From assembly GCA_965240325.2 (NCBI GenBank), contig OZ251240.1, forward strand, positions 868,001 to 932,000: a DNA stretch of 64,000 nt. Direction: 5' to 3'. The stretch comes from Rebecca billardiae RCC1528. Taxonomy: Eukaryota > Protista > Haptophyta. Shown here in pieces: positions 27,588 through 59,839 of the stretch. The translations under genes and the position numbers were made by a program. The notes under the pieces are model-generated. The model ran no database searches. It was not told the origin of the DNA and was given only the letters and a program-made list of their open reading frames with translations. The stretch's first letter is position 1; every line of letters starts with the position of its first letter.

Positions 27588-28153
27588 GCCGGGCGTGCGC
27601 AACCATTCCCTATCTCGCGCCCAAGTCCTGCGGCATGTGGCAGTCGGAGGAAGTGGCGTCAAGCAGACTTAGTAGCAGTCCGCGCAGGCTTCGAATCAGT
27701 CTTCGATGCCTGGACAGCCGCATGTTTTCTACCGAGATTCTCGGCCCCTGCCACGAGTTCAGACGAATTGACCAGCATCGTCGGTAGACGGTAGAAAGCC
27801 GCCTGTCTGAGGCGGCCTGTGCCGAGTCACCGACGACTTATTGCACTATTAATAGATAGGTCTGTGAGTAGTATCAGATTGAGATAGGTCGTAGTTCGTT
27901 ATTATTTTTTTAAAATTATAAACTAATACGACTACTAATAGTAGCATCAGCGCAGCTAGCTTCTTATTATAAATAGTATTATAAAGTAGTATCGTCGTTG
28001 TATTATACTAATAATAAATAATAATAATATCATATATATATATGATTAATGCATGCTGTCCATACTAAACACTAGTGACCTACAAGTACATATAATGCCG
28101 ATATATCATGCACTAGTGCGGCGGCGCCGACGGAGTTCGGTACAGTACTGTTA

Positions 28154-28201
28154 CAGTTTACTAAGAATAAGAGACGCACACAGCTCAGGCAGGCGAGATT
28201 G
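28154..28201 (+). repeat. 48-bp dispersed micro-element, TA-flanked copy
   Basis: TA-CAGTTTACTAAGAATAAGAGACGCACACAGCTCAGGCAGGCGAGATTG-TA; identical to 30819..30866. Confidence 0.85.
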
Positions 28202-28788: not shown

Positions 28789-30678
28789 TCACACGAGCTC
28801 CACCCCCGCACGCCGCCCAGGCCTCTGCGTGCGCCCGGAGCCGCACAGCGGCCAGCCGCAGCCGCGCATGTGTGCGGGGTACTCGCCAAACTCCTCCTCG
28901 GCATCAGCCTCGGCGTGCGCCGCACCTGCAGCGCCGTCAGACTTGGCCAGGGCACCGGACTCGGCGGAGGCCTCGAAGAGCTCCGGCTCGAGGCGCACGA
29001 GCAGGAGTGGCGCCAAGCACGCGAGCAGCTCCGGCCGCGCGCGCGCCGTGCGCCGGAATCCGCTGAAGTCGAGTGCGTCATCGCGGGTGGTGTGCGCGGC
29101 CGCCCACAGCGCGAGCGCGGCCTGATCGCTCAGCCCAAGCCCCGGTGGGGGCGCAGTCACTAGTCGCAGCAGCCGCTCGCGCGGCACCAGCCCGCCCGGC
29201 TCGGCCGCCTCCGCCGGACCCGGCGGTGGCGGCGTGCCGGTGAGCGCCGCCCACCACAGCACCTCCGCTGCGCGCCGGTGCGCCTCGCTCGCGCCGGCCG
29301 TGCGCATCAGCAGCGCCGCATGCAGCCAGTCGGCAAACGTGACGACGCCGTCCCCGTCCACGTCGAGCGCGCGGAAGGCCAGCTCGAGCTCGGCTCGAAG
29401 GAAGCGCGCGGCCACGTCCTCGCCCACGCGGGGCGTCGGGCTCGGGCCCGCGCCGGCCGCGTCGGGCGTGCGCGGCGGGGCACGCGAGCCGCCGCGCGCC
29501 GCCGGCCCCGGCCCGTCGCCTGCGGGCGCGCCCTCTGAGCCGAGCCACTCGGCGAGGGTGAGCTCGCCGCGCCGCCGGGCGTCCAGCCGCGCGAACTCGG
29601 CGAGCGCGGCCTTGAGCCCGTCGCGGTCGACGCCGAACGCGGCCTGGAGCGCGGCCGCGCCCACCACCGCGCTCGCCGTCGGCATGCCCAGCCTCGCCGC
29701 GCGCGTCTGCAGCACCACGTCGTCTTGCGAGTGGCCAGTCGTTGGCACGCCGAGCGCTGACGCCATCCGCTCGCGCACGTTGGCCGCAAACAGCTGCGGG
29801 TCGGCGCGCTCGGCGGCGTTCGGCACGTACGGCGGGAGGTACTCGACCTGCATGTGGTTGACGAACTGCGTGAGCAGCCGCAGCACGATCTTCAGCGACG
29901 AGCCGTTGCCGTACACCCAGCTCGGGTCCGCGTGGCTGTGCGGCAGCTTGACAATCACCGGCTGCACGGCCGCGCCCGGCGCAAAGGCGCCGTGCTTGAA
30001 CGAGATCAGGGTGGTGCCGTTGGTGACGGTGCCCTCGGGGAAGACGGCGACCTGCGGGAAAGGCTGCTCGGACAGCGCGCGCCGGCTGATCTCCGCGAGC
30101 ACGTCCGCGCGCGACGTCGGCGACGCGCGGTCGACGAGGATCGTCTGCATCGCGCGCGCCATCGCCGAGAAGAGCGGCACGTCCACGTTCTCCGCCGCGG
30201 CGACGAAGCACGAGCCGTGGCGCGCGGCGAGGTAGATGGGCTCGACGAAGCCGCGGTGGTTGCACACGAGGATCGGCGCCTCGTGCCGCGCCGCGGGCCG
30301 CCCCTTCTCCTCGATCCAGTAGTAGCCTGCGATGAAGAGCTGCAGTCTGAAGAGCAGCCTCATCACGCCCACGAGCAGCTGGCGTGGGCGCGAGAGCGAG
30401 CGCGGCGGGTGCGCCGACAGCGCCTCGTCGGGGAGGAATGCAATGGCGAGGCGCGCGAACACCCACTCGAGCAGCATGCACAGCGCCACGCCCACCAGCC
30501 GCACGGGCAACAGCGTGACGGCGGTGATGCACGTCTTGACGACGTCAAACACGCTCACCGGTCGGCTGCCGACAGCGGTCGGCACGAATGGGTTGATGGG
30601 CTCGGGTATGCGCCTGGGTGTTGGTTTCGCACCACTCAGCCCGTTCGCTGACGTCGACGGGGTCGGCGCGACCGACAT
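28789..30678 (-). CDS. Lysophospholipid acyltransferase (LPCAT/LPEAT-like) with EF-hands; single exon
   Basis: ILVCNHRGFVEP, ILVDR, VFPEGTVTNG..LISFKHGAFAPG..VQPV; EF-hand DVDGDGVVTFADW. Confidence 0.93.
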   Translation of the reverse strand: MSVAPTPSTSANGLSGAKPTPRRIPEPINPFVPTAVGSRPVSVFDVVKTCITAVTLLPVRLVGVALCMLLEWVFARLAIAFLPDEALSAHPPRSLSRPRQLLVGVMRLLFRLQLFIAGYYWIEEKGRPAARHEAPILVCNHRGFVEPIYLAARHGSCFVAAAENVDVPLFSAMARAMQTILVDRASPTSRADVLAEISRRALSEQPFPQVAVFPEGTVTNGTTLISFKHGAFAPGAAVQPVIVKLPHSHADPSWVYGNGSSLKIVLRLLTQFVNHMQVEYLPPYVPNAAERADPQLFAANVRERMASALGVPTTGHSQDDVVLQTRAARLGMPTASAVVGAAALQAAFGVDRDGLKAALAEFARLDARRRGELTLAEWLGSEGAPAGDGPGPAARGGSRAPPRTPDAAGAGPSPTPRVGEDVAARFLRAELELAFRALDVDGDGVVTFADWLHAALLMRTAGASEAHRRAAEVLWWAALTGTPPPPGPAEAAEPGGLVPRERLLRLVTAPPPGLGLSDQAALALWAAAHTTRDDALDFSGFRRTARARPELLACLAPLLLVRLEPELFEASAESGALAKSDGAAGAAHAEADAEEEFGEYPAHMRGCGWPLCGSGRTQRPGRRAGVELV

Positions 30679-30802: not shown

Positions 30803-30866
30803 CAGTTTACTAAGAATACAGTTTACTAAGAATAAGAGACGCACACAGCTCAGGCAGGCGAGATTG
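30803..30866 (+). repeat. 48-bp micro-element with tandem duplication of its first 16 bp, inside a divergent promoter
   Basis: tacagtttactaagaa-tacagtttactaagaataagagacgcacacagctcaggcaggcgagattg. Confidence 0.85.
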
Positions 30867-32046: not shown

Positions 32047-33315
32047 ATGTCGCAGGATCGCAACGTACCATGGGATCCGATGAAGGCGTTCGGTGGCTCG
32101 TCCTTCGGCGCGCAGCCTGCGAGCACTCGCGCGACGGCTCCTGCTCACGGGTTTGGCACCGGTGTGCGCGAGCAGATCGAGAAGATCTACCTGAGCAAGG
32201 AGCACGCAAAGTACATCGTCCCCGATGTGCCTGCGCCCATGCATGTCACAGAGCACGCTCTCGGGCGGCAGCATCTCTCGTACAAGCGGACGGCGCCCGC
32301 GTACGCATTTGCGCGCGCGGACCGCTTTGCCGTGTCGAGCAGCTGGTCGGGTGCCAACATCCCGGGCCCGGGCGCGTACACGGTGGGCTCGTCCATCGGG
32401 CCGCAGGTTGACGCAACGAGGGCATCCCGCCCGCGCTATGGCTTCGGTAAGAACTCGCGCTCCATCGACCACAGGCTGTGGGTGAGCGCCGAGTACAACG
32501 CGACGTTCATTGGCCGGCAGTCGCCCGCGGCCGACTACAACATTCGGACCGCGCTGGGCACGCAGCCCGAGGCACGCAGGCGCTCGGCGCCCTCGTGGTG
32601 CGCGCGTGGGCGCGCGGATGCGCGCCGCGCGCGCTCGCGTGCCCCCGCGCGCGTGCGCCGGGCCGCTCATGCCGCCATCGCTGCCGCCGCCGGTGCCGCA
32701 GGCAATTCCCGCGCTCGGAGCGGTTCAGGTACCCCCACATGAAACGCGCCGTGCAGCTGCCGGGCCCGGGCGAGTACGAGGCGTCTTCGATGATCGGGCA
32801 GCAGCGCGAGTCGCGCCGCGCGTCGGAGCCGATGCACAACTTCACCAGGGCCACGCGCGAGCAGGAGAGCAAGGTGATCCTGACGAACCCGGGTAAGGAG
32901 TCGCCAGGGCCGCAGGCTTATGCGCACAGCACGACGTCGCTCGGCACGCAGCGCGAGTCCGTGAAGCGGAGCAACCCGATGTGGTGCGTGCGCCGCGCTG
33001 CACTGCGGGGCACGGGCGGTGATCCCCCGCCGAGGGCGTGTGCGCGTAGCTGCTGGCGGCCGTGTTGCGCGAGTCGCTGGCGCATGTGGTCGTTCTCCTG
33101 CGCCTGGTCGATGAGGCGTGCGGCCCTCACGCACTCGCCGGTCCACACCTCTGCTCTGACTCGGGCCGGATTAACCCCGGCGCCTGCCCCGTGGCCGCCT
33201 CCCGCCGAACCGCCACTGCAGGCGCTTTGGCACGGGAGACCGCTTCAATGCCCCCGGCTCGCTATTGCGAGCTGACAACGGTGTACCGGGACCCGGCGCG
33301 TACTCTGGTATCTAG
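32047..33315 (+). CDS. ODF3/SHIPPO-repeat (PGPGxY) axonemal protein; 3 exons
   Basis: Repeats IPGPGAY, LPGPGEY, SPGPQAY and VPGPGAY, with PxYxFG linkers. Introns at 32598..32701 and 32984..33221. Confidence 0.88.
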
Positions 33316-33481: not shown

Positions 33482-33964
33482 TAACGACGTGGCAGCATCC
33501 GACAAGCGTCAGGCTCAGAGTGCAACAGACACATAGAATGCGTCCGCGCCTAGTCCGTCCAGGTCAGACAGTGCGCCACCCGCAGCCCTGCCCCCCTACG
33601 GGAGCGGGGCCGGGATGGAGCACCGCCTCGGCCTGGGGCACGCGGCGGCGACGGCAGATGCCGCCGCGGCCGAGCGCCTTCCGGAGCACTTGGATGAGGG
33701 TGAGGTCGTAGTCGATGTCGCCGCCCGCCGACCTAGCGGCGAGCAGCTCCGGCAAGCGGCAGCCGCGGCTGTCGCCCCCGTGCGCCCGTGTGGGCGCCTG
33801 GATGAGGATGAGGTCGTAGTACGCGTCGCCGCGCGCCGGCCAAGCGGCGCGCAGCTGCAGAAGAGGGGCTCGGAGAGTGAGCGCGCCGCCTAGCGCGCTC
33901 TGGGCGATGAAGCAGATGAGGTGGTAGTCGATGTCGCAGCCCGGCCCGCCGGCGGGCTGCTGCA
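33482..33964. mobile_element. 0.48-kb interspersed element flanked by a 12-16 bp direct repeat (TSD)
   Basis: tgcactacccccatat at 33466-33481 and 33961-33976; a second copy with the same endpoints lies at 59464..59839. Confidence 0.8.
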
Positions 33965-34183: not shown

Positions 34184-36245
34184 ATGGTCGCGCGACCGTT
34201 CAATTTGCAGAACGCTGGTGCGTCGGCCCCCCCGCATCTCGATTGTGCACGCACCTGCGCACGGCGGACGCCGATGCCGCCAGGTGCTCCGCCGGGCACG
34301 TCGACCCCTGAGGCCTGCCATCTGCGCTCGGTCACGTCCTTCGGCCGTCTCGCCCGCCGCTCGTTCAAGTCGTTTCCCTCGGCCGGAGCGGACGTGCCGA
34401 GCCAATCGGAGGCCGCGCCCTTCGCAGTGCGTGGCGTGCCACTCAGCGACATCCTGCGCAACGCTTCCGTGCTCCTCTCGGCGGAGGGAACCCTCGCGTT
34501 CAATGCTGCGCAAGCCAGCGACGCGCCGCACGCGCTCGCCGCTAGACACGACGACGACGACGCGAGCATGCGTGTGTGCGCCGCGGTCGCACATGCGCTG
34601 GGCGTCTCTCGCAAGCCGTCGGGTGATCAGCGGCGGTTAGATCCGTTCGAGCTGTCGGAGCCGTGCGTGCAGCTTGATATCTTCTTGAGCCACTCATGGG
34701 GCGCGTCGCCCGCGCTCAAGGTGCTCGCGCTGCGATTGCATGCCAACGCGCTGCCTGCCTTTGCCGCCGCCAACGCGGCCGCTGGATGCTGCGCGGCGCT
34801 CACGTGGGCACGCCTGCTGCCGCGGGCGCACCTCGCGTACTCCGCCACGGGCACTTTCGGCTTTGGCTTCTCGCACGCCGCGTACACCGCCGTCTTCGTC
34901 GGCGGCGTGCTCTGGGGCAACGGCTGGACGCGCGGCGCGCGCACACGCTGCTTTCTGGACAAGGCGTGCATCGTTCAGAACGACGAGGCTCGGAAGGCGG
35001 AGGGCATCGCGCACGTGGACGAGGCGATCGCGCGTTCGAGCCGGTTCCTGCTGCTCTGGTCGCCCGCGTACTTTGAGCGGCTCTGTGCGCGCGCCGCGCC
35101 CGCCGCCGCCCCTGACACCGCGTGCCCGCGTGCCCACACACCCTGCGGCACTGGGCCTGAGCAGGCCGCGCCACGCGCTGCGCACGTGCGGCGCACCGCA
35201 CCGCGCGCGCGGCGCAGGGTGCGTCTTCGAGCTGGCGGCGTTCCTCACCACCCACCCGCCGTCGGACGTGGAGCTCCTCCCGCTCGTGCTGCCCGCGGTC
35301 GGGCTGGCCATCACCCTCGCGTACGGCATCGGCCTGAGTGCCTACTGGTACGTAGCGCACCTGTCTCTCGTGGATGCGAGCGCTGGCGGACCACTCGCGC
35401 TGATGCGGAGCATGATGCCGCCGTTCCTGCTGCCGACGCTCGTTGTCGGCTGGCTGCACTCGGTCACGCTGCACAACCAGTGGCAGCTCGAGGAGCAGCT
35501 GGCCAAGTTCCGCGTCGAGCGCACGCGCTGCTTCTGCTGCGATGTCGGCCACCGCGGGCCGGACGGATCGGCCGTCCATTGCGACAGGGCCACAATCCTG
35601 TCCAAGCTGCAGCGCTGGTTTGGCGATGCCGCGCCGCTCTCCGGTGGCGCCACGCCGGCGGCCTCGCCTCGAGCGGCGCATCGACTTTCGCCCCGAGACC
35701 TGCGCTCTGGCCGAGTCGAGCCGCGCCCGACCGGCGTGCGCGTCTTCGAGTCGATCGTGCGCGCTGAGCTACCGGCGTGCTTGCGGCACATGGCGGGTGC
35801 GTCCAACACACCCACGCCGATGCACTTGGCGCTCACGATGTACGGCGGGATCTTCTGGTTCGGCGTGGACATGGCGCTGGTGCCGCCGGGCGCGCTCGTG
35901 GTCGACGGCACGTGCGCGAACGGCTCCGCCGCCGCGGGGCTCAGGGGCGCGTACGACATTGCGGTGAGCGCGTGCGGCGGCATCGCCGTGCAATTCGCCG
36001 TGACGGCAGTCTCATGGTATCTCGCGCGGAGCCTGTGCGTGCGCGCGCAGCGGTGGGGCGTACACTCGAGCGCCGTGCACGGCGCGCTGGCTGGCACGGC
36101 GCACGCGCTCGTGTTTCTGCTCGCGTGGGCGCTGTGGGACACTCTCGTGCACGAGATGAGGCTCGACACGGTTGGAGGCGTGGGTGCGGTCGTCGGTACT
36201 GCGATGATTTGCGCCGGGCTGCGCGAGCTGTGGCGATTGTCGTGA
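34184..36245 (+). CDS. Multi-pass membrane protein with TIR-like domain; 2 exons
   Basis: DIFLSHSW ... CFLDKACI ... EAIARSSRFLLLWSPAYFERL|WCVFELAAFL across intron 35085..35217; several hydrophobic helices. Start codon uncertain. Confidence 0.8.
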
Positions 36246-36392: not shown

Positions 36393-37682
36393 TGACCGCG
36401 TTCCGCGGTCCTTTTCTGCATAGAATCAACGCAGTTGGGGGCCCGCGGTGGCCGTGCAATCGCGGCTCTCCGCCGTAGTGGCAGTTCGCCAGTTGAAGTC
36501 GGTTCTGAGATGACTGAAGCTATATTAGTCCGACCGTCGCCCTGCCTGCGCGACCGCGAGACTCATTCACACTTCACACAATCACAGCAGCGGACCTGAG
36601 ACCGCACCCGGCACCGGTCGTCAAATCGGACGTCCGTCTGACAACTAGCTGCCAAATGTCCAACTGGCTGATCAGCTCGGATCCGACCCGTCCGCGATCG
36701 TGCCATCGGCATCGGAATTACTACTAGTAGCTGCCAAACTGTGTCCAACTCTGGCTGATCAGCTCGGATCCGACCCGTCCGCGATCGTGCCGAGTGAGTC
36801 GTGCCGCGGAGCTCGGAGTACTGAAGGAGTCGGGTGTGACAGCAGGGTGCTTTAGCGCTGCGGCCCGTGCCAGCCAACGACCAGACGTACTCTGGCCACT
36901 TGACCCGTTGCACGGGTGAGTGACCGTACGCCCTGCCTAGTGCCTACCGCGCGCGCCGCGCGACCGGCGACTCGGGGTGATGGAGAGCGGATGGCGACAG
37001 CAGCAGCAGTCCTCATGAAGACGATGAAACTGGCGGCACGGGTGCACGAGGTGGCAGGCGAAAGCGCGCCGACGAGACCGCATTTGACACACCTGAGCCG
37101 CACGCGCGTGCCGTCGCCGAGGGCGAGTGGCGAGCGCTGCAAACGCGCAACCGTACCGCGCGCGCCACGACGGCGCGGCACTAGCTGATGCAGGCCGTAC
37201 TGCCGGCACTGCTTCTGCGATCATGCGCCACGGTCGCAGCTGACTGCGTGAGCAGCAAGCGGGAGGCGGGTCCGGAGGCACGTGCAGGCGCCGTCCCGCA
37301 TATCCGCCATCGCCCATCGTGCCGGGGCACGTCACCTCCGACGATCCGGATGTGGCCCAGTCCGGACGTCACGCGATCCGGGAAGACGAGTACGATTCGC
37401 TCGTAACGAACCGTTACACTAATGTCACGTCCAGCTGACGTCCAGATCGCACTTTACTTAAGGGAATCAGCTGGGCGCGCTTTTTTTTGGCCTGATAGAC
37501 CTCTCAATGCGATCTCAAAAACTCGAAACTCGGTCTCCGCCAGCCCTAAAAATCGCCCCCCGTCCCTTTTTTTCCGCCGCCCCCCGTCCCTTTTTTCTTG
37601 ATCATAAAGATCTTTTTGAAACGTGGTTCGGGCCCGCTGGTGCGGGCTCCACGCTGCGCGCTCCGCCCTGCACCGCGGGCCA
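36393..37682 (-). mobile_element. Non-autonomous DNA element, copy A (Helentron/HINE-like ends, TAA-flanked)
   Basis: Both ends match the ends of 57059..58830 in inverted orientation. Stem-loop GACCGCG-TTC-CGCGGTC at 36394-36410; 11-bp asymmetric IR at 36440-36450 and 37671-37681. Confidence 0.8.
36654..36791 (+). repeat. Internal direct repeat of about 45 bp
   Basis: ccaact(ct)ggctgatcagctcggatccgacccgtccgcgatcgtgcc occurs twice. Confidence 0.85.
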
Positions 37683-38267
37683 TAAGTTAACGTGCATGCA
37701 CTGATGCAGTACGCCGCCCTGTACGGGTGTCTCGGTCAGTGGTTTGAGGTTGGGTGCCAGGTGGTGGTTGGTTGGGGGCTGGCCAGGGTAGGGCTGGAGG
37801 CTAAGAGTAAGAAGGCAGTAAGGCTTCGGCCGCCAGCCTGATCACCCGGAGCCCGTTATATATAAATAAGGGGAATTTTAAAAAAAGTATATATATAATG
37901 ACGATCAGTAAATCAGTTATATATATATATTAGAAAATTATTATTATAGATCATACCGTCATACGCACCGTTTGAACGCCCACGCCATGCAAGGGCCCTT
38001 GCACGCGCGTCGTCGCTCTTTCCATGGCGGCGAGGCGGAGCACAATCGTCGTGCTGTGCAAGCTTGAACCCCTGCTGGGTTCGGCTTGGTCCGTACTGGT
38101 ATCGGACCCCGGCCCGCTTGGTGGCATAGACGGGCTTCTCGTTGATGGGCCCACGGCCACGCGTCTTGAGCTCACCGCTCGTCCGTCGGGTCCCCGCATG
38201 AGTATTATAAAATTCTACGCTGTCGTCGTTCGGTCGTAGCTACGCAGCGTCGTCTACTAGTAATGCC

Positions 38268-41200
38268 TTAGATGATCCCATCGAGGATGGCCGGGATCGC
38301 CGCGAGTGCACAGATGACCAGCGGCTCGATGACGACAAACGTCTGCGAGAGCGCGATGGCCCACGACTGCGCGAGCGCGCTGAAGCGAGCCTCGCCGAAC
38401 GAAAGTCCGAGGCTGATCGACAGCGCCGCGCACACCGCGAGGACGGTGGCGCACAGGAGCCACGAGATGCCGATCTTGACGCGGCCTGGCAGCGACGTGC
38501 GCTGGTGCGATCGGCGCTTCGCCTCTGCCTCCTCGAAAGCCTGCAGACCGCCGGGGGTGCGCCATGCGCGCACGCACGTGAGTGGTGCTGCTCCTTTGGG
38601 CGCGCGCGCACACGCTTGGACCGGGCGCGGAGGCGGCGGTCGCGGGCGCGTACCGCCATGCGCTCGTCGTACCACTCGAGCAGCGCGCCGAACTGGATGC
38701 TGCCAGTGCTGCCTGCATCGAGCTGGGCGCCCACCCTGCGCAACGCGCGCGCGCGGGCGCACGCGGTGTGCGCAGTGAGTAAGCCGCTCGTGAACGCGCG
38801 CGCTTGAAGCGGAGCGGACGAGGTGTGGCGCGAGGCGGCGGAGGCAGGGCGCGCGCGCGCCGCACCGCGCACCTCTCGACCTGCTCCGCCGTCATCGGCA
38901 TGCCCAGCCGCGTCATCAGCGCGCGCAGCTCGGTGCGAGCCACCTCGCCCGAGCGCGCCGCCGCGTCGTGAGCACTGAACACTCTCCACATGCCCCTCAC
39001 CTCGCGCTCGCTGAGCACGAACGAGGACGCGCCGAGCGCGTCGGCCGCGTCGGCGCGTCGGCGCGACTGTGCGGTGAGCGCTCGGACGAGCTCGAGCTGC
39101 GCCGGCGGCAGCTCGTCGAGCGCCGGGCTGGCGCGGCCGCCGGGTGTGCCCCGCCCGCCGTCGGTGGGTGACGGCGTGGTCGGCGTGCTCGCGCGCGTGC
39201 GCTGCCGCTGCCAGCTGGTGCCACTGCCACCGGCGTCGCTCTGCTGCTCCGACAAAGGGCCGCGTGCGCCCGCCTCCCGCGACTCCCCGCGGCCCTCCCG
39301 CGGCGGCGGCGGCGCGGACTCGGCGGCTTCGCCGTCGCCGGGCGTGCTCGGTCGGCCGGGCGACGCTGGGATCGGCGCCGGCGGGCTTGGCAGCTCAGGG
39401 GCGGCCTCGCCCCAGCCCGTCCGAGGCCGCACGAGTCGCAGCTGCCGGGCGTCAGGCGTAATGAGAGCCGGCGCGGAGCCAGAGCCGCGCGAGCTGCGCG
39501 CCGACCGATCCGCGGCCCCGGCGTGCAGCAGGCGCAGCGGTGACGTCGCGACGGGCGAGCCCTCGCGTGGCGGCGCGAGCGCGCGCACGCGCGGTGGCGA
39601 GAGCTCAACCTGCTCGATGCCCTCGTCGTCGCGCGCGCGAGGCGGCGCGGCGCGCGGCGGCGACGGCGGCGGCGATTGGGAGGGCTGTGCTTGGCGCTCA
39701 GACGGCGGCCTCGGCCGCGGCACAGCCGGCCTGGCCTCTGACGCCGGCGCGGCCGACTGCGCCGCGCGCGGAGCCGCGCGCGGAGACGGCTCGACTCGGT
39801 CGGCGCCGGCGGGCGCGCGCGGGCGCGCGCCGACCGAGCTCACGCCCGCCTCCGAGGCGAGCATGCGCGCGCGCCGCGGCTTGTACCCCGTCGCGGCGTG
39901 CAACAGCCGTCGAAGAAGTGGCGCGCGCCCCCCGTACCCCCACCGCCACAGTGCGCGGAGGGCGACGATGGCGGGTGCGGCGCAGCCGGCGCAGATGAAG
40001 CTGTTGACGACGAGCACGGCCGCGGGCACGGCCGTCTCGCTCGCCGGGCTGAGCAGCACGGCGCAGAGCAGCACCTCAAGCAGCAGCACCGCACACAGTG
40101 TGGCCGCGCGCTGCGGGCGGCGCACGCGCGCGTCGAGCCCAGAGTAGAGCCCGAGGAGGGAGTGCTCGGCGAGCAGCGCGGCGCGCGCGGATCGGATGCC
40201 GCGCGCGAGCAGCGCGGGCTGAGGCTCCGCGCCGCTGCCCGCGGCAGTCGCCGCGTCCTGCTCGGCGCGCACCTTCGCCGCCTGCAGCCGGTCGTCGCGC
40301 CAGTCCGCCCACGCGCCGAGCGCGCCGAGCGCCGCGCACGCGCCGAGCACGCTCAGGACGAGCGCGAGGATCGCGGCGCGCGAGCCGGATGGCCTCGGCG
40401 GGCGCTGCACGGAGGCGGCGGCGGGGTCGTCCGCGCCCCCGCCCGCGCCGCCGGCCGCCGCCGCCACGCCGCCGCCGTCCGCCTCGTCGGGCGGCGTCGT
40501 GACGGAGACGCCGCCAAAGTCGGTGAGGTGTGTGCACGCGCAGTACAGCGTGCCGTTGTCGCCGCCCGGCGGCGTGGGCACGGTCTCGCAGCCGTCGGTC
40601 GACCACGCGCCCTCCGCCACGTCCCAGAAGTGGCACAGCGCGCGCTGCAGGCAGCTCGGCCCGTACCACGGCGCGTCGCACGCGCACGCGCCGCCGGGCG
40701 CGCTCGCGTTCGGGTCGACGCCGAGCGCGCTCGCGTTGTGCGGCTCGAGCACGCACGCGCCGCGGCCGTTGCAGCCGCCAAACTCGGCGCACACGCCCGA
40801 CGCGCCGTACTGCAGCTCGTGCGACGCGCTGAGCGGGATCGCGATCACGATGGGCTCGTCGAGGCCGGCGACGGAGAGCTCGGCGCCCGTGGACGCGGAG
40901 GAGAAGGTGATCGCGTACACCCCCGTCTGCAGCTCGCCCAGCCCGGGCTGCGCCGTCGGGTCGCCATTCGTGTTGCGCGCAAACAGGTACTGCACCACGT
41001 CCACCACCGACGCGTTTGGCAGCGCGTCGAGCGCGCTCAGCGGCACGGCGAGCCCGCCGATGCCGCCGGGGGCGGCGATGGTGGAGTTGGGCACCGTGGA
41101 CGAGCGGCCCGCCGAGAGGCTCAGCCCGTTGCCCGAGAGCTCCTCCAGCTCCTCGTCGGCGACCTTGCCGGCGAGGAAGGCCAGGGCGAGCGCGGCCGCG

Positions 41201-44200
41201 GAGTCGGTCGCGAGCGTGTTGATCGCGCCGAGCACGGTCGGGTCGAGCGCGCTCGCGTTGGCGCCGAGCACGGAGAGCACCGACGAGAAGAGCGCGCTCG
41301 CGGCGGCCTCGTCCATCCCCGACGCCGTCGAGCCGAGCGTGAGCGCGAGCGTGAGCGAGAGCGCGTCGAGCTGCGCGCACGCGCTCAGCTCGGACGCGTT
41401 GGCGCTGAGCAGGACGTCTGCCACCGCGCCCGCCAGCTGCTTGCGCCGCGTCGCGGTGGAGACGGTGGCGTTGCCCGCGCTGCCCACGATCGTCAGCATC
41501 TCCTCGACGGCCGAGCCCGAGCCATCGCACGCCGGCAGCTCGGCGGCGGTGCCGTTCGCGCTCGTGTTCGTCGCCTGCAGCGCGCGGCGCGCGGTCGGGC
41601 GCGGCGCGGCCGCGCCCAGCCGGCGCGCGCGGCCGGCGCGCGCGGCGCCTCCGGCGCAGCTGCCGTCCTTTGCGAGCGCTGCGAGCAGCTGCATCGAGCG
41701 CGCCACGTTGCCCGTGGCCAGCTCGTCCTCCGCGCGCGCGATGATCCCGGCGCAGTCGATGTCGGAGGGCGCGAGCACGGTCGTGCTCGCCGCCGCGTCG
41801 ACCGCCGAGCCGTAGAAATCGAGCACGCGCACGGCGAGGGACAGCGCACCCTGCGGCAGAAAGACGCTGACGAGCGTGGGCGAGCGCACGCGCTCGGAGA
41901 GCGCGCGCGGCACGGCGTCCGCGCCGTCGGCGGTGGGCGTGTACGAGAAGGCGTACTCGAGGGGCAGGTCCGACGCGTCGTCCGTCCAGCCCAGCGCCTG
42001 CAGGCTGAACGCCGTCTCGAGGGCGCGCCCGCCCGCCGCGGGCTCGACCGTCAGCCCGCCGCCATACGGCGGCCGGTTGATGAGGACGTCCACGCTGCCG
42101 ACCGCGTCGGCCGCGCCGCCCGAGACCGTGAGCTCGAACGAGTACCGCGCGCCGGGCGTGAGCACGCCGCTGCGGAACGCGAGCGTGCGCTTGTCGTCGC
42201 CCGTCGTCGTGACCGCGCCGTCGGCGAGGTCGAGGGCCGAGGCCGAGCGCACGCCGCCCAGGTCGACGAACGCGCGCCACGCGTACGAGTAACGCGCGCG
42301 GCCGCCGCCCACCACGCCGGCGGAGATGGCGAGCCGCTCGGTCGGCAGCTCCCACGTGGGGTTGTACTTGAGCGCGGTGAGCGGCTCGAAGCCGATCACC
42401 GGCACGTCCGGCCTGTCGACCACCTCGAGCGAGAGCGAGGACGTCGCCGCCTCCAGCCCGGCCTTGGCGAGGCGGAGGCTGACGGAGTAAAGGCCGGCGC
42501 CGAGCGCGCCCGGCGGCAGCGCGAGCACGCTCGCGCCGAGGTCGACGCCGAGCGCGGCGTCGAAGGCGACGGGCTCCCCCGCCGTGCCGTTCGCGTCGGG
42601 CGCCACGCTCCAAGCGAAGCTCAGCTCGCTCTTGCCCTGCAGCGCGGGCACGTTGGGGTCGTAGGAGTTGGACGCGTCGATCGAGACGGCCGCGTCCGCC
42701 GAGGTCTGCCGGTCGCCGCCTGCGACGATGATCTGCAGCTCCTGCGCCTCGACCTGGAGCGTGACGGTCGCGCTCGTCGCCGCGCTCGGCTCCGCCTCCA
42801 TGTACGCGTCCAGCCGCAGATCGTACGAGTACCCCGCGAGGAGCGTGAATGGCGGGATGAGCAGCCCGGGCTTGTCCGGCGCGTCGACGGGCAGCGCGAG
42901 GCCGGCGTCCGCGCCGCTCGCCGTCTCGGTCGAGCCGAGGTACGACCAGCGGAAGACGACGGTCGCGCCCGAGCCGCTCGGCCAGCACTCGGCGAGCGTG
43001 GCGACGCCCTGCAGCAGCCGCGACTCCGACGGCCGCGCCGTCTGCACGCGCGGGCCGTCGATCGCGAGCGCGGGCGAGGCGCCGCCCGCGCGCGACACCG
43101 ACCACTCGACCAGCGAGGACTGCCGCCCGAGGAAGGAGGCGACGCGGAGCAGGAAGACGTAGCTGTCGCCCTGCAGCCCGCTCAGCTCGACCACCGGGCC
43201 GGTCTGCGTCGCGAGCTGCGCGTTGAGCGCGTCCGCAAAGTCCGAGCGGCTCGGGTCGACGCGCCACGTGTACGTGAGCGGCACGGCGCCGCCGCCGGAC
43301 GACGCGGTGCCGTCGAGCCTCAGCACCTCGTTCGGGCACTGCGAGATCTGGCTCGGGCCGGAGATGTCCGCGACGGGCACGGGGCACGAGCCTGCGCACG
43401 GGAAGTCCGCGTCGATCGTCGCCGAGCCCGACGCGCACAGCCCGCGCGTGCCCGGGCACTCGCCCGTGTACAGCAGCGGCGTGATCACGTCCGGCCGCAG
43501 CGCGAGCGCGTCGCCCGGCCGCAGCTGCGTGCGCGCGTTCAGCCGCGCGACGATTGTGAACGCGTTCTCCCACAGGCAGCGCGGCTCCTCGTCCGACGAG
43601 CCCTTGAGCAGGCTGACCGTTGCGTCGTCCAGCACGATCGAGCACCGCTCGAGGCCGTAGACCCCGCCGCGGTTGGTCTCCTGCCCGTCGAGCACGAGCC
43701 GGACTGCGGTGGCGTCGTCGCTGAAGACCGCCGCGCTGATCTCGGGGGCGTGCAGCCCGCGGAACGTGTACTGTGGCGCGTCCGCCGCGTCGGCGGGGGC
43801 GAACTGACGCCCGTTGAGCGCGACGGTGACCGCGGCGCCGCCCTCCTCGCCCCAGCTCGACAGCTGCACGATGTGCGTGTCGTTGAACGAGAGCGGCGCG
43901 GCCGCGGTCGTCGGGCCAAAGCGCACCCGCAGAAATGACGACGGCGCGTCGCCGTACTCGACGCCCGACTGCGCGAGCGCGGCGAAGCCCGAGCCGGTGA
44001 GCGTGACGGTCGTGCCGCCGATCGCGTCGCCGAGGTCCGGGCTCACGCTCTCGACGACCGGCTCGTCGTAGTACACGAAGCGCACGGCCGAGTCCGTGGT
44101 GGAGGCGAGCGTGCCGTTGTTGAGCGAGATGTCGAGCGTCACGTTGCCCGCGCGCCGCGCCGGCGGCACCGTGCACAGCGCGCGCGACGAGCCGTCCGCC

Positions 44201-47200
44201 GCGTCGGAGAGCAGCGTGGCGCGCGCGGCGCACTCGCCCGCGCCGTCGAGCACGCAGCAAAGCCGCTGCCCGCCGGCCGCCGCCGCGTCGCCGTACTCGT
44301 CGAAGCCGGCGCCGAACACGGTGACGCGCGTGCCGCCCGCGACCGGCCCGCCGGGCGGCACGAGCCTGCTCACCGCCACGTCCGCCATGTCGTACAGCTC
44401 GAAGCCGATCTCGTCGAAGAGCACGGGCACCGCGTGCACGCCGCCGTCGAGCGAGAGCGAGACGGTGTACTCGCCCGCGCCCGCGCCGGACGGCGAGTCG
44501 CACGTCGCCGTGCCCGCGTCGCGCACCGCGCCGGGCGCCTCGACGGCGGCGCCGCCGGCGCTCGGCGCAAACGCGCAGCGCGTCGCGCCGAGCTCGACAA
44601 AGCCCGAGCCGAAGAGAGTGAGCGCCGGGTCTGCGCCGCCGACGGGCGCGCCGCTCGGCTCGGCCGCGGAGACGAGCGCGGTGTACAGCGTGAACTGCGC
44701 GCCGTCGTCGGTGAACGCCTGGCCGTTGAGCGACACCTCCACGGCGATGTCGCCCGGCGTGACGAGCGGCGAGATGTACGGCGCGGCGCAGAGCACCTCG
44801 TCCACGCCCGCATCCGGCAGCGTCCCCGCCACCTCCACGCGCCCGCCGCCAAAGTTGGGCCCGACGAAGGCGCACGCGAGGCCGGCATAGTCGGTGAAGT
44901 TGGTGCCGCGCACCGCCAGCGTCGCGTCCTGCGTGCCCTGCGGCGCGCCCGGCGGCCACAGCGCGGTCACGCTGACCGCACCCATCTCGAAGTAGGCGAA
45001 CGCATTCGTGATCGCCACGGGCTCGCGCGGCTCGCCGCTCGCCGGGTTGCTCTCGTCGACGACGAGCGAGAGCGCGCGCAGCGCGGGCGCGTCGAGCGCG
45101 GGCGCGGTGCAGTTGATCTGCGTGGGCGTGATCGCGTCCACGCGCACGCGCACCTCCGACGCGCCGTCGCCAAACACGCAGTAGATGATGCCCGCCTTGC
45201 TCTGCGCGCCCAGCTCAAAGCCCGAGCCAAACACGGTGACGCTGGTGGACCCAAAGTCGACGCCGACCGGCGCGCCCGTGGGCGCGAGGCTGCTGAAGGC
45301 GGCGAGCGCAAACGGATCGTCCGGCAGCGTGACCGAGAGGGTGGTCGAGGCGAACTGGCGCCACGGCAGGCCCTCCGACGCCGCGCCGAAGCGATAGCAC
45401 AGCCGGTGGCCGGTTGCGACCGCGCCGAACGTGAACCTGCCCACGCCGCCACTCACCACCGCGTTCGCGTCGCCCGAGATCCGGTCCGCCTCGGCGCAGC
45501 CGCTACTCGCCGACATCGGCACGAAGTACGCCTCGTCGCCCTCGCCGATGCCCACGCCCTCGAAGGCGACCGGCTCCTCCACGGTGACCACCGCGAGCAC
45601 GACAAACGGCCCCGAGATCTGCAGCACGTCCAGCGTGAGGTTGGCGTAGAGCGCAAACGGCTCCGTCCCAAACCGGTAGCAGAGTGCGTACCCGAGGCCG
45701 CCCGTGCCGGGCAGGAAGGTGAAGGACGAGCGCCAGTCGGCGCTCACCGGCTTGGCGCCGCCCCACTGCACGCGCGGCGGCTGCGACGCGCACGACGCCG
45801 TGCCGCCGGGCACCCAGTACGCGCGGTCCGTGCTGCTCAGCCCAAACCCGTCGAACAAGACGCCCTTGGCGCTGCCCACGACCGCGCGGCCGCCGCCCGA
45901 GTAGCCGAACAGTGCGTTCACGGCGAGCGTCACGTCGGGGTAGTGCGCCCACGGCTCCGCGCCGAAGCGGTAGCACAGGCTGAACCCCGTGCCCGCGGCG
46001 GTGGGCGCGAAGCTGCCGCCGCCGGACGCGTCGACGACGAACGCGCCGCCGAGCTCCGCGCGAGCGCCGCCGCCCGCCGCGGGGCAGTCCGCCGCATCGC
46101 TCACCCAGTAGGCCGCATCGCCCTCCGCGACGCCCACGCCCGTCACGCGGAAGGGCTCGGCGACGCCCGCGACCGCGACCGTGGACGCCGGGCCCTGCAC
46201 CTCGGCCGCGACGAGGCGCAGCCCGGCGAGGTACACGTACGGCTCGTCCGCGTGCTTGAAGCACAGCCGCAGGTCCGCGTGCGCGGCGCCAAACGCGAAC
46301 GCCGCGCGGAGCGAGCCGTCGAGCGTCTGCACGCCGCCGTACGCGGCCGACAGCGTGTCGGCCGCGCTGAGCTCGGCCGCGCAGTCGATCGCCGTGCCGT
46401 TGTACGCGGCCCAGAACGCCTGGTCGCCCGCGCTCAGCCCGACCCCGCCGAACGTCACCGGCTCGGCCACGCCCACCACGCCGAGCGTGGACGCGGGCGT
46501 CTGCACCTGCACCGCGTCGAGCGTGAGGGCCGGGTACAGCTTGTACGGCTCGCCCGCAAACGCGTAGCACAGCGCGAGGCCGAGGGCGGGCGCGCTGAAG
46601 CTCACGGCGAGCTGCGAGGACGCGTCGACGGCGCGCACGCCGCCGTACGCGCGCGTGCTGCTTGAGCAGTCCGCCGCGCTCGGCTCGACCCACTTGGCCG
46701 CGTCGCCCGCGGCCACGCCGTGGCCGCTGAGCGCGACCGTCTCAGCGACGCCGACGACGACGCGCGTGAACGCCGGGCCGTCCACGTCGTACGCGTGGAG
46801 CGCGACGGCGGCGAAGAGCGCGTACGGCTCGCCCGCGAACGCGTAGCACAGCACCAGCCCGCCCGGCTCGGCCGCGGTCGTCTGCGCGAGCGTGAAGCTC
46901 GCGCCGCCGGCCGCGCTCACGTTCTGCGCGCCGCCGTACGCGGACGAGGGCGGCGCGTCGGCGCACGACGCCGTGCCGGCGGGCGCCCAGTACGCGGCGT
47001 CACCCTCGCCGATGCCCACGCCGGTGAAGAGGACGGCCTCGGGCACGCCGACCACGGCGACTGTGGCCGCGGGGCCCCGCACCGCGTGCGCGTCGAGCAG
47101 CCGCGCCGCGCCCGAGCCCGCGCCGTACAGTCGCGGCGGCGCGCCCGCAAACGTGTAACAAAGCTCGAGGCCGAGGCCGGCGGCGCTGAAGTCAAAGGTG

Positions 47201-49812
47201 GCGGTGCCGGCCGCCGAGACGGCCTGCTCGCCGCCGAAGCCGGCGGGCGTGGCCGAGCAGTCGCTCGCGCCCGGGCTGAGCCACTTGGCCGTGTCGCCCT
47301 CGCCCAGCCCGTACCCCTCGAAGCTCAGCGTCTCCGGCACGCCCACCACGACCGCGGAGCGCGCGGGCGCGCTCACGTGCAGCGGCTCGAGCGAGACGGC
47401 GGGGAAGTGCGCCCACGGCTCGGACGGGCCGAAGCGGTAGCACAGCCCGAGCGGCGCGGAGGTGGGCGGCGGCGCGAGCAGCTCGAACGCGCCCACGCCG
47501 CCGCTCACGTTGCGCTCGCCGCCGTACGCCGCGACGGCCGCGCCCGCGAGGCAGGCGGCCGCGCCCTCCGCCCAGAAGAAGGCGGAGCCTTCGAGCGAGG
47601 CGCCGACGCCGCCAAAGGCGACCGCGGCGGGCAGCCCGACGACGGCGCGCGAGGCCGCGGGCGACGAGACCTCGAGCACGTCCAGCGCGATGCTGCCGTA
47701 CAGCGCGAACGGCTCGGCGCCGTGCGCGTAACAGACCGCGTGCCCGAGACCCGCGGCGGGCACGCTGAAGTTGGCCGCCAGCTGCGCGTCCACGGTGGAC
47801 ACCGCCGAGGCGCGCGCGCTGCTGGGGCCGTCCTCGGCGCACGCGGCGGCGGTGGCCGCGCCGGGCAGCAGCCAGAAGGCGCGGTCGCCCGGCGCGAGCC
47901 CGACGCCGCTGAACGTCACGCGCTCGGCCACGCCCACCACGCCGAGCGTTGCGACCGGCCCGGTGAGCTGCAGCACGTCCAGCGTGTGCGTCGGGTAGAG
48001 TTTGAACGGCCGGCCGCCAAACTTGAAGCACAGCTGCAGCCCGAGCGCGCCCGAGCCGATGGCGAAGGCGGGGCTCTGTCCGGCGGTGGGCAGCGTGATG
48101 AGCCCGCCCAGGGCAGCATCCTCCGTGAGCGCGCAGCTGCTCGCGCCCGCCGGCACCCACTTGATCACGTCGCCCGCGGCCAGCCCCTCGCCGCTGAGCG
48201 ACACGGCCTCGGCCACGCCTGCGACGAACGTGAACGCGGTGGGCGCGCCGCCGAGGCCGTACACGTCGAGCGTGATCGCGGCGTACAGCTTGTACGCGTG
48301 CGTGCGGAAGCGGTAGCACAAAACCAGCCCACTCGTGCGCTCGGGGAACGTCGGCTGTACGCGCGAGCCGACGAGCGGGAGCGCGGCGCCGCCGTCGTGC
48401 GCGGCGGGCGCGTCCGCGCAGCCGAGCGCCGCCGCGTCCGCCGCGGCCACGAACTTGGCGGCGTCGCCCGTCTTGACGCCGATGCCCGAGAAGGTGACGC
48501 GCGAGAGCACGCCCTCGACCACGAACGCGCGCGAGCTGCCGAGCACCTCCTGCGCATCCAGGTAGTACGTGGGCTCCTCCGTCCACGCGCCCGCGCCGGG
48601 GCTGCCGCTGCCGACGGGCGCGAAGTAGCAGAAGCGCAGCGCCCACGCGGGCTGGGCGAAGGTGAACGTGGCGTTGCCGCCGACGAGCGTCTGCTCGGCG
48701 CCGTACGCGTCGAGCGCGGGCGCGGAGCAGTTCGCGCCGCCGCCGCCCTCCGCGGCGGGCAGCCACTTGAGCCGCGAGCCGTCCGGCAGCCACCACTCTG
48801 GGCCGAGCGCGAGCTGCTGCGGCACGGCGACGACCGCGGTGAAGGTGGTGGCGTTCTCGCGCAGCGGCGGCGGCGGGCTGGGCGGCGGAGGGGAGGGCGG
48901 CGGCGGCGAGGGCGGCGGCGGTGGCGGCGGGCTGGGCGGCGGCGGCGAGGGCGGCGGGCTGGGCGGCGGGGTCGGCGGCGGGCTCGGTGGCGGCGAGGGC
49001 GGCGGCGGGCTGGGCGGCGGTGAGGGCGGCGGCGGCGGCGGCGGGCTCGGCGGCGGCGAGGGCGGCGGCGGCGAGGGCGGCGGCGAGGGCGGCGGCAAGG
49101 GCGGCGGCGAAGGCGGCGGCGGGCTGGGCGGCGGCGGGCTGGGAGGTGGCGAGGGCGGCGGCGAGGGCGGCGGCGAGGGCGGCGGCGAGGGCGGCGGCGA
49201 GGGCGGCGGCGAGCTCGGCGGCGGCGGGCTCGGCGGCGGCGAGGGCGGCGGCGAGGGCGGCGGCGGCGGCGGCGAGGGCGGCGGCGAGGGCGGAGGGCTC
49301 GGTGGTGGGCTCGGAGGGCTCGGCGGCGGGTACGGCTCAGTGCGCGGTGGCGGCGGCGGGCTCGGCGGCGGGGCAGGCGGCGGCGGTGGCGGGGGCGGCG
49401 AGGGCGGCGGGCGTGGGGGCGGTGGCGGCGGCGGCGAGGGCGGCGGCGAGGGCGGCGGTGGCGGCGGTGGCGACGGCGGTGGGCGCGGCGGCGGCGGTGG
49501 TGGCGGCGATGGCGGCGGGCTCGGCGGCGGGCTCGGCGGTGGCGGCGGCGGGCTCGGCGGCGGATTCGGTGGCGGACTCGGTGGTGGCGGCGGCGGAGTC
49601 GGCAAGGGCGGCGGGGGCGGGTCCGTTGGCGGTGAGGGCGGCGAGCTTGGCGGCGGCGATGGGCGTGGCGGCGGGCTCGGCGGCGGACTGGGTGGCAGCG
49701 AGGGCGGCGGTGGCGGCGGCGGCGAGGGCGGCGGGCTTGGCGGCGGCGGTGGTGGCGGCGAGGGCGGCGGCAAGGGCGGCGGCGGCGGCGGCGGGGGCGA
49801 AGGCGGTGGGCT

Positions 49813-49843
<31 letters not shown>

Positions 49844-49932
49844 TGGCTCGGCGGTGGCGGCGGTGGTGGCGAGGGCGGCGGGCTCGGCGGTGGCGGGGGT
49901 GGCGACGATGGCGGCGGGCTCGGCGGCGGGCT

Positions 49933-49965
<33 letters not shown>

Positions 49966-50325
49966 GCTCGGCGGCGGCGGTGGTGGCCGCGCGGGCGGAG
50001 GCGAGGGCGGCGGCAAGGGCAGTGAGGCAGGCGGCGGGCTTGGCGGCGGGCTCGGCGGTGGGCTCGGCGGCGGAGGCGGTGGCGGCGAGGGTGGCGGGCT
50101 TGGGAGCGGCGGCGGCGGCGGCGAGGGTGGCGGGCTCGGCGGCGGCGGTGGCGGCGGTGAGGGCGGCGGACTGGGCGGCGGCGGTGGCGGCGGTGACGGC
50201 GGTGGGCTCGGCGGCGGCGGCGATGGCGGCGGCGGCGATGGCGGCGGGCTCGGCGGCGGCGGCGGCGGCGAGGGTGGCGGGCTCGGCGGTGGCGGGCTCG
50301 GCGGCGGCGGCGAGGGCGGCGGGCT

Positions 50326-50358
<33 letters not shown>

Positions 50359-56650: not shown

Positions 56651-57058
56651 CGCTGGGCGCACCCGCCGCGCGCTGGTGATCGGTGCCGGTCGCGCGCGCA
56701 CGCCGCCAGCGCGTGCTATGCCGACCTACCTCGAGTTGACCGCAGACACCATGCGTGCACACAGTGACACTGCTGGCACTGGCGGCGTGCGAAGGTGGTG
56801 CAAAAGCTGCTCCAGTACGGCAACGCGAGCGTGCCCCTCGACGGCTCGGCATGCCAGCGCGCGTACCCCTTGTGCTGAGAGCATCGGGACGGAGCAAATC
56901 TATATATATATAGTTGCTTTTAAAAAGTTTAGCTAAATGTGAGTAAATGTCGGCGCGTCGTCTCTTAGTCTTATTTAAATTATAAATAATATATAATGAT
57001 AATAAGCAGTGTGCTTATTACTTATTATTATTGCGCCTTATAAATGAGTTATTAATTA

Positions 57059-59463: not shown

Positions 59464-59839
59464 TAACGACGTGGCAGCATCGGACAAGCGTCAGGCTCAG
59501 AGTGCAACAGACACATAGAATGCGTCCGCGCCTAGTCACTACGGGCTAGTCCGTCCAGGTCAGACAGTGCGCCACCCGCAGCCCTGCCCCCCTACGGGAG
59601 CGGGGCCGGGATGGAGCACCGCCTCGGCCTGGGGCTGGGGCACGCGGCGGCGACGGCAGATGCCGCCGCGGCCGAGCGCCTTCCGGAGCACTTGGATGAG
59701 GGTGAGGTCGCCGGCCAAGCGGCGCGCAGCTGCAGAAGAGGGGCTCGGAGAGTGAGCGCGCCGCCTAGCGCGCTCAGGGCGATGAAGCAGATGAGGTTGT
59801 AGTCGATGTCGCAGCCCGGCCCGCCGGCGGGCTGCTGCA
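59464..59839. mobile_element. Second, internally deleted copy of the 0.48-kb element
   Basis: Near identity to 33482..33964 with a deletion of about 125 bp and two small insertions. Confidence 0.85.

Follow-up and report, generated by a model that had tools for sequence, protein, structure and literature searches.

A predicted membrane-split TIR-like protein of the haptophyte Rebecca billardiae and its unnamed protist family

In a 64,000-nucleotide stretch of the genome of the haptophyte Rebecca billardiae RCC1528 (contig OZ251240.1, positions 868,001 to 932,000; hereafter the window, in which all nucleotide positions below are counted), we identified a two-exon gene on the plus strand (34184-35084 and 35218-36245), whose spliced product of 642 amino acids (aa) is predicted to be a membrane protein with a TIR-like domain split by its own membrane helices. 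By sequence comparison, it belongs to a large protist family that has no name so far and whose members are eight-helix membrane proteins with a split TIR-like domain. The comparisons below establish the gene model and the family, along with its fold class and pattern of conservation, and we judge the chance as somewhat better than even that the product works at the membrane as a glutamate-dependent TIR-type enzyme on NAD+ or a closely related nucleotide, with the membrane part of this eight-helix protein serving as a switch. In bacteria, plants, and animals, TIR domains play central parts in immunity and in programmed cell death, and their on/off control is actively studied. To our knowledge, all described TIR domains are compact soluble modules that have at most a membrane anchor outside the fold, and a literature search with incomplete journal coverage found no published account in which membrane helices interrupt a TIR fold.

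Gene model and splicing

The DNA of the locus is eukaryotic and GC-rich (approximately 60-80% GC around the gene). One open frame, frame 1, begins with the ATG at 34184, another stays open as far as the TGA at 36243-36245, and the predicted intron joins them. Exon 1 (34184-35084) holds 300 codons and the first base of a Trp codon. Its translation is collinear with the relatives described below and comprises a variable N-terminus, a conserved VRG motif, strand beta-A, a first membrane hairpin, beta-B, alpha-B, and beta-C. The intron (35085-35217) is 133 nucleotides (nt) long, has GT and AG at its ends, and is of phase 1, splitting the Trp codon as T|GG. Exon 2 (35218-36245) starts with the GG of this codon, continues for 341 codons, and ends with TGA; it encodes alpha-C with the putative catalytic Glu, beta-D, a second hairpin, a cytosolic region with a Cys cluster and helices, and four membrane helices.

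The predicted splice is supported because the two exon pieces abut in relatives with a single residue between them, the Trp of the split codon. The exon-1 segment aligned by phmmer up to residue 214 of the relative P0017 and residue 217 of the relative P0004, and the exon-2 match started at residue 216 of P0017 (E 1.65e-27, exon-2 residues 1-312) and residue 219 of P0004 (E 1.0e-22). The gap between the two pieces is thus exactly one residue on both proteins, the invariant Trp. Transcriptome-derived relatives read RLWCxYE unbroken. Homology supports the proposed removal of 35085-35217 by splicing, and the gene, as read from its translation, is an intact family member. Conservation of the intron in the family was considered and rejected; the relative from Pavlovales sp. 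CCMP2436 is intronless. A tblastn search within the 64-kb window found no paralogue of the gene.

A large family in protists

An exhaustive phmmer search with residues 153-300 of the product (148 aa) against 1.84 billion cluster representatives returned 923 representatives at E ≤ 1e-3, of which 49 reached E ≤ 1e-10, the best E value being 5.9e-22. Most of these matches spanned the whole 148-aa query with identical motif spacing. Because 923 representatives were found with this shared spacing, the observation lies far beyond chance. Word-index protein searches with each exon returned the window's own open reading frame (ORF) alone, and a search by ESM features with exon 1 returned unnamed eukaryotic clusters only. 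Named members come from dinoflagellates (Zooxanthella nutricula, Biecheleria cincta, Symbiodinium, and Durusdinium), haptophytes (Pavlovales sp. CCMP2436 and Chrysochromulina rotalis), and Perkinsus olseni. Two P. olseni members, P0027 (KAF4696489.1, FOZ60_000179) and P0161 (KAF4696487.1, FOZ60_000177), have neighboring locus tags on one 364-kb contig, a hint that the family has undergone local duplication in this parasite. In the databases, members are named "hypothetical", "unnamed", or "Transmembrane protein", and one ESM Atlas cluster is named "TIR domain-containing protein (Fragment)".

The architecture of the family is uniform. In the N-terminal half, an LLRG motif is followed by beta-A with FxSHSW, an insert with two hydrophobic peaks, FLDKxCIHQxD, alpha-B, beta-C with LVLWSP, and YFxRLWCxYE; the rest consists of beta-D with a Pro, two hydrophobic helices, a C...DR element, an F...VR motif, and four hydrophobic helices. 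The window protein is collinear over its full length with the family members P0002-P0151, and the matches of exon 2 lie directly downstream of those of exon 1 on the same proteins. The preliminary description of the gene, made from the letters and translated reading frames of the window, had missed this membership; to judge from the sequences of the relatives, the gene is not an isolated oddity.

The Cys element varies in the family. Among 124 relatives, a long CxCC..H..CDR form is found in 48, including the window copy, and a short 7-aa C-x4-DR form in 70, while the final D and R of the element are conserved in 98% and 95%, respectively. A zinc knuckle as a core family feature was therefore rejected, since the long Cys cluster is missing from most relatives. 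Outside eukaryotes, a pattern scan with the signature motifs found no relatives in the viral contigs of IMG/VR, and a scan for two signature motifs only found none in 185,579 bacterial and archaeal genomes. A giant-virus origin, or copies in giant viruses, was likewise rejected, as neither the pattern scan nor a fold search of BFVD found any.

Motifs and TIR identity

The preliminary description had claimed that TIR_2-type motifs appear in order after splicing, with two hydrophobic segments between the first and second motifs and further helices downstream that enclose a CFCC..GH...HCDR cluster. All the motifs were found at the places it named in the 642-aa translation, the two hydrophobic segments are present in the window copy and also in relatives, and six further helices lie in exon 2, with the cluster CFCCDVGHRGPDGSAVHCDR between the second and the third. 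The features of the protein, all on the plus strand, can be followed from the N-terminus. The first conserved motif, FAVRGVPLSDILRN (34421-34462), has the family consensus LLRG...L, with the Arg conserved in 97%, and forms a strand and a helix in the predicted structure of P0004 (predicted local distance difference test score, pLDDT, approximately 97). DIFLSHSW (34676-34699) corresponds to the beta-A strand and the following loop of a TIR-like fold; its F, S, and H are invariant and its W is present in 126/127 sequences. Membrane hairpin 1, the first pair of hydrophobic helices (34715-34927), takes the place of the TIR helix alpha-A, as indicated by hydropathy, the P0004 model, and charge bias, and the distance from motif 1 to motif 2 is 84 aa in the window copy against a family median of 86. 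Next, CFLDKACIVQND (34949-34984) represents the beta-B strand and a region equivalent to the BB-loop, and resembles the HET motif; its D is invariant, and its C and Q are each present in 126/127 sequences. The segment EAIARSSRFLLLWSPAYFERL (35024-35083), in which EAIARS/RFLLLWSPAYFERL spans the same 35024-35083, covers the end of alpha-B, beta-C, and the loop to alpha-C, and is the only part of the window copy touched by Pfam TIR_2.

Exon 2 opens with (W)CVFELAAFL (35218-35246) at the start of alpha-C, where Glu305 (codon 35229-35231) falls on the position of the catalytic Glu in TIR enzymes, and continues with VELLPLVL (35268-35291), the beta-D strand, whose conserved Pro is found in 93% of the sequences and which is strand E235-239 in the P0004 model. 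Membrane hairpin 2, the second hydrophobic helix pair (35289-35471), follows directly after beta-D, with a hydropathy maximum of 2.08 and model helices H241-265 and H270-307. The Cys cluster CFCCDVGHRGPDGSAVHCDR (35529-35588) is of the Cys3-His type and is likely a zinc knuckle. VRVFESIVR (35736-35762) is the conserved F...VR motif; it forms a cytosolic helix that falls inside the TIR-aligned range of the model. The four C-terminal hydrophobic helices (35820-35882, 35949-36026, 36072-36149, and 36171-36233) are poorly conserved except for one Asp (83%). Altogether, exon 2 contributes six hydrophobic helices beyond hairpin 1.

That the domain is TIR-like, as had been claimed from its motifs, was borne out by hidden Markov models (HMMs), by a sequence profile, and by predicted structure. 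When domain slices of 40 relatives were compared with Pfam at E ≤ 0.01, TIR_2 (PF13676) matched 27/40 (best 7.8e-8), TIR (PF01582) 14/40, and HET 6/40 (best 5.4e-4). The slice of P0004 reached 30.7 bits against the TIR_2 gathering score of 28, which makes one relative above the threshold. A profile of the 40 slices gave 21 distinct matches among PDB sequences at E ≤ 1, with a best value of 0.0056, and all 21 were TIR proteins, including Cat1, RPS4, RPP1, Roq1, RUN1, SNC1, TLR2, and IL-1R-type chains. In these alignments, WCxYE of the family falls on the WCxxE catalytic motif of the PDB TIRs, and W|CVFE of the window copy falls on WCVRE of RPS4 and WCWDE of Cat1. The Glu at the catalytic position, reported earlier as intact, is indeed present in 126/126 family sequences. 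The window pieces themselves gave no match to the HET HMM (PF06985).

Predicted structure of a close relative

The protein modeled with AlphaFold2 was P0004, the closest full-length relative, whose identity to the window protein is 41% in the exon-1 segment and 26% in exon 2. The full model, built from 128 aligned sequences, had a pLDDT of 84.9 and a predicted template modeling score of 0.86, and a model of the domain slice had a pLDDT of 91. The case for the fold rests on Z-scores of the aligner VIA, on Foldseek probabilities, and on the consistency of the matches. With Foldseek against the PDB, neither model had a match at E ≤ 1e-3; TIR structures were the sole matches with a probability above 0.5 for the full model, and for the domain slice they stood on top, most at probabilities of 0.85-0.99. 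With VIA, which is independent of Foldseek, the full model aligned with the TIR domain of RPP1 at Z 7.9 over 136 residues (model residues 75-424) with a root-mean-square deviation of 4.1, followed by SARM1 (Z 7.3), SpbK (7.2), and MyD88 (7.1). In the ranking for the domain model, every one of the first 32 rows except row 28 was a TIR-containing protein, ThsB, a nucleoside deoxyribosyltransferase, or a relative of these, with Z 5.4-7.6, and the MyD88 TIR domain was the best single structural match (Z 7.6). TIR structures were the best non-helical matches to the P0004 models, SARM1 scoring Z 7.0-7.3. We assign the TIR fold class because the family HMMs, the PDB sequence profile, and the predicted structure agree; the Z values alone are middling. 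A TIR/flavodoxin-like fold in a structure model was a check that the preliminary description had named, and the P0004 models have it, with Z values of up to 7.9.

The models also show how the fold is divided. In P0004, beta-A (77-82) leads into a 33-residue helix (H89-121), a short beta-hairpin, a 22-residue helix (H144-165), and beta-B (172-174), and no separate alpha-A helix is present. Beta-D (235-239) is followed by helices 241-265 and 270-307, and the Cys element then precedes helices 335-356 and 388-408. The alignments with TIR structures run from P0004 residue 75 to about 420 and cover 36 more residues than those with the slice that ends after beta-D. Because the TIR alignments extend past hairpin 2 in this way, the TIR-like fold appears to be interrupted twice and to be completed by cytosolic helices after hairpin 2. 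This apparent second interruption, after beta-D, was overlooked in the earlier account. The family thus does not have a contiguous TIR domain of approximately 120-170 residues; hairpin 1 lies between beta-A and beta-B, and a helix pair follows beta-D.

Two other matches of the P0004 model were seen. Residues 225-549, which correspond to exon 2 of the window gene, had as their best matches, all weak, the membrane domains of ABCA3, ABCA4, ABCG2, ABCG1, and LptFG (Z 6.2-8.0), lipid-handling ABC folds in which a nucleotide-binding alpha/beta domain is the partner on the cytosolic side. In the ESM Atlas, a haptophyte cluster with H-NOX (PF07700) was a weak structural neighbor of the full model (TM 0.39, 256 residues aligned). 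The family of the window gene itself carries no additional sensor domain.

Membrane topology

Both insertions hold an even number of helices, two each, and all TIR segments are therefore placed on one side of the membrane; the P0004 model assembles one alpha/beta domain from the separate segments. In the family, the flanks of hairpin 1 on the TIR side have net charges of +1.5 and +1.7, and the two hairpin loops have -0.4 and -0.8, a pattern that, by the positive-inside rule, puts the TIR part in the cytosol. The predicted membrane embedding, proposed in the preliminary description, with both TIR halves on the same side, which it had named as a point to check, is supported by the helix numbers, the single modeled domain, and the positive-inside charge. 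The two hairpin-1 segments of the window copy are rich in Ala and have Kyte-Doolittle maxima (19 residues) of 1.43 and 1.34; the corresponding family medians are 1.96 and 1.83, and approximately 80% of the members exceed 1.6.

Conservation

The most conserved positions, in the numbering of P0004, are F80 (127/127), S82 (126/127), H83 (127/127), W85 (126/127), K92 (124/127), D176 (127/127), C179 (126/127), Q182 (126/127), W218 (125/125), and E222 (126/126), the last being the putative catalytic Glu. Nearly all positions conserved in at least 80% of the sequences lie in the cytosolic domain, and the membrane helices contribute only Asn, Ala, Asp, and Pro. At almost every one of these positions the residue of the window copy is that of the consensus; the one exception is a Pro in a poorly aligned C-terminal helix. 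Invariant polar residues of this kind fit an active site. Since this constraint is combined with the Trp-x3-Glu arrangement, which is that of the NAD+-cleaving TIRs (SARM1, AbTir, and plant TIRs), a glutamate-dependent enzyme is favored.

Proposed mechanism and alternatives

We propose that a cytosolic alpha/beta domain of the TIR/HET type would be built from separate segments of the chain, in the order beta-A, a membrane hairpin in place of alpha-A, beta-B/alpha-B/beta-C/alpha-C/beta-D, a second hairpin, cytosolic helices that complete the domain and may include a zinc knuckle, and four membrane helices. At the membrane, the invariant Glu of WxxxE would cleave NAD+ or a closely related nucleotide, and the state of the membrane part would turn the enzyme on or off, so that the outcome would be a transmembrane signaling or cell-death switch in one protein. 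Control by the membrane is suggested because the active-site loops sit on strands that pass straight into membrane helices; in the P0004 model, a membrane helix runs on directly as the strand before the BB-loop equivalent. The NADase activity and the immune or receptor role that the preliminary description considered are putative. A wider idea, which is possible but which we regard as doubtful, is that the family represents a new class of one-component transmembrane signaling enzyme of marine protists, with a TIR active site coupled mechanically to the membrane helices within its fold, in which a membrane or extracellular cue would directly trigger NAD+ consumption or the formation of an NAD-derived messenger, for example in cell death or defense of infected bloom-forming algae.

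Several points weigh against this proposal. The structural scores are middling (Z below 8, Foldseek E at least 0.04) and come from models of a relative, not of the window protein, and no beta-E strand is evident in the P0004 model. The exon-1 pieces of the window gene scored 15.2 bits (E 0.031) and 17.9 bits (E 0.0046) against Pfam TIR_2, under the cutoff of 28, where the exon border cuts the domain, and the hairpin-1 segments of the window copy are weakly hydrophobic. Known TIR enzymes need self-association. In addition, the conserved Cys, Gln, and Asp after beta-B are, in sequence, HET-like, and the chemistry of HET is unknown (PMC10197012).

Nucleotide-binding alpha/beta domains control some ion channels and transporters. 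One alternative, which we consider unlikely, is that the TIR-like domain binds a nucleotide or an NAD-derived ligand without turnover, thereby gating a channel or transporter that consists of the eight helices. The direct wiring of the alpha/beta domain into the helices of the P0004 model, the weak matches of the membrane part to membrane domains of the ABCA/ABCG/LptFG type (Z 6.2-8.0), and a conserved Asn in helix 1 and Asp after helix 5 would all fit such a protein. However, helical matches with Z below 13 are unreliable by the aligner's own note, and a set of poorly conserved membrane helices next to invariant catalytic-type residues fits an enzyme better than a pore. Equally unlikely, in our view, is a TIR/deoxyribosyltransferase-superfamily enzyme whose chemistry or substrate is a different one, such as N-glycosidic cleavage of another nucleotide, synthesis of 2',3'-cyclic nucleotides from nucleic acid, or a HET-type reaction that uses the Cys and His. 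The HET-like FLDKxCIxQxD with its near-invariant C and Q is not found in classical TIR enzymes, 6/40 relatives matched HET, and nucleoside 2-deoxyribosyltransferases scored nearly level with TIRs against the domain model; on the other hand, W-x3-E and the FxSHS of beta-A are those of NAD+-cleaving TIRs, and TIR_2 outnumbered HET by 27 matches to 6.

Many animal TIRs act as adaptors, and the best single structural match of the domain model was the TIR of MyD88 (Z 7.6). A non-catalytic adaptor or scaffold that recruits partners at the membrane, as in animal TLR/IL-1R signaling, is nevertheless quite improbable in our view, as the Glu and six or more other polar residues are invariant across 126 diverged sequences, which would be unusual for a pure scaffold. 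Finally, a silent or decaying copy, or a retained intron that leaves only a truncated or frame-shifted product (a 527-aa read-through ORF), could be suspected from the dispersed repeats that flank the gene and from the intron that the intronless Pavlovales relative does not share, but is very improbable given that both exons are open, nearly every conserved position is kept over 642 aa, and no stop or frameshift occurs besides the GT-AG intron.

A glutamate-dependent enzyme under membrane control would be of interest on several grounds. The helix pairs sit inside the fold, beside the strands that carry the active-site loops, and this design is kept in more than 900 sequence clusters from haptophytes, dinoflagellates (among them coral symbionts), and the oyster parasite Perkinsus. 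If active, the family would offer a simple, testable case of a TIR enzyme controlled directly by the membrane and a candidate component of stress, infection, or death signaling in ecologically important plankton. If inactive, it would show the extent to which the TIR fold can be rebuilt.

Genomic neighborhood

Fragments of a gene with SHIPPO (sperm-tail PG-rich) repeats lie directly upstream of the TIR-like gene on the plus strand (approximately 32047-33275), and their sequence suggests a flagellar protein. Further upstream, on the minus strand, is a gene for an acyltransferase (PF01553) fused to EF-hands, similar to lysophospholipid acyltransferases (28792-30678); it is bracketed by a perfect 50-nt direct repeat (28152-28201 and 30817-30866). 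Downstream, an uninterrupted ORF of 4402 codons on the minus strand (38260-51465) encodes a polycystin-1-like receptor with TIG, REJ, and GPS domains, and this ORF holds a long low-complexity stretch with periodic repeats of 9-15 nt (approximately 48750-51200). At the start of the window (1-4848, plus strand), approximately 67 tandem copies of a 66-nt (22-codon) unit, with 88-98% identity, lie in an open ORF of 1612 codons.

The preliminary description had placed the gene between two mobile elements. Dispersed repeats do flank it: the repeat at 33482-33964, with an internal periodicity of 108 nt, is 91-98% identical to 59464-59839, and that at 37458-37690 has an inverted copy at 57052-57257 with 79% identity. 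A local tandem repeat (36646-36704 and 36728-36791, 92% identity) was also found. However, the flanking ORFs that were scanned contain no transposable-element protein domain, the repeats contain no recognizable transposon ORF, and the neighbors are ordinary genes. The transposon reading of the flanks was accordingly rejected.

Comparison with known systems

With the enzymatic TIRs (SARM1, RPP1/RPS4/RUN1, AbTir, ThsB, and Cat1), the family shares the alpha/beta fold class, a beta-A of the type hydrophobic-x-F-[LI]-S-H-S, W-x3-E at the start of alpha-C, and the Pro of beta-D. It differs from them in that its domain is non-contiguous, with a helix pair in place of alpha-A and a second pair after beta-D, in that it has an invariant CIxQxD in the loop after beta-B, and in that it is without NB-ARC, LRR, SAM/ARM, or STING partners.

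The fungal HET domain (PF06985) triggers cell death in heterokaryon incompatibility. The family has in common with it the motif trio of SxxW, [FW][LI]DxxCIxQ, and a downstream W...E, whereas HET proteins are soluble and fungal, and in the family described here TIR_2 is the stronger match. A remote homology between HET and TIR has been described (PMC10197012).

The third group for comparison is that of the membrane-tethered TIRs, namely animal TLR/IL-1R, Dictyostelium TirC, and the TIRs of Gephyrocapsa huxleyi. The TIR genes of G. huxleyi, which encode N-terminal membrane helices followed by a TIR domain, respond to virus infection (PMC12489294), and for TirC, a preprint proposes that a transmembrane tether is essential to tame its NADase (PMC13142454). 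The same preprint catalogs eukaryotic TIRs from EukProt and reports several uncharacterized eukaryote-only clades, without describing a membrane-split architecture (PMC13142454); members of the present family may be among those clades. Like the tethered proteins, the family is predicted to hold a cytosolic TIR at the membrane. In those proteins, however, the helices lie outside an intact TIR domain, whereas in the family of the window gene they are inserted into the fold and account for the larger part of the protein.

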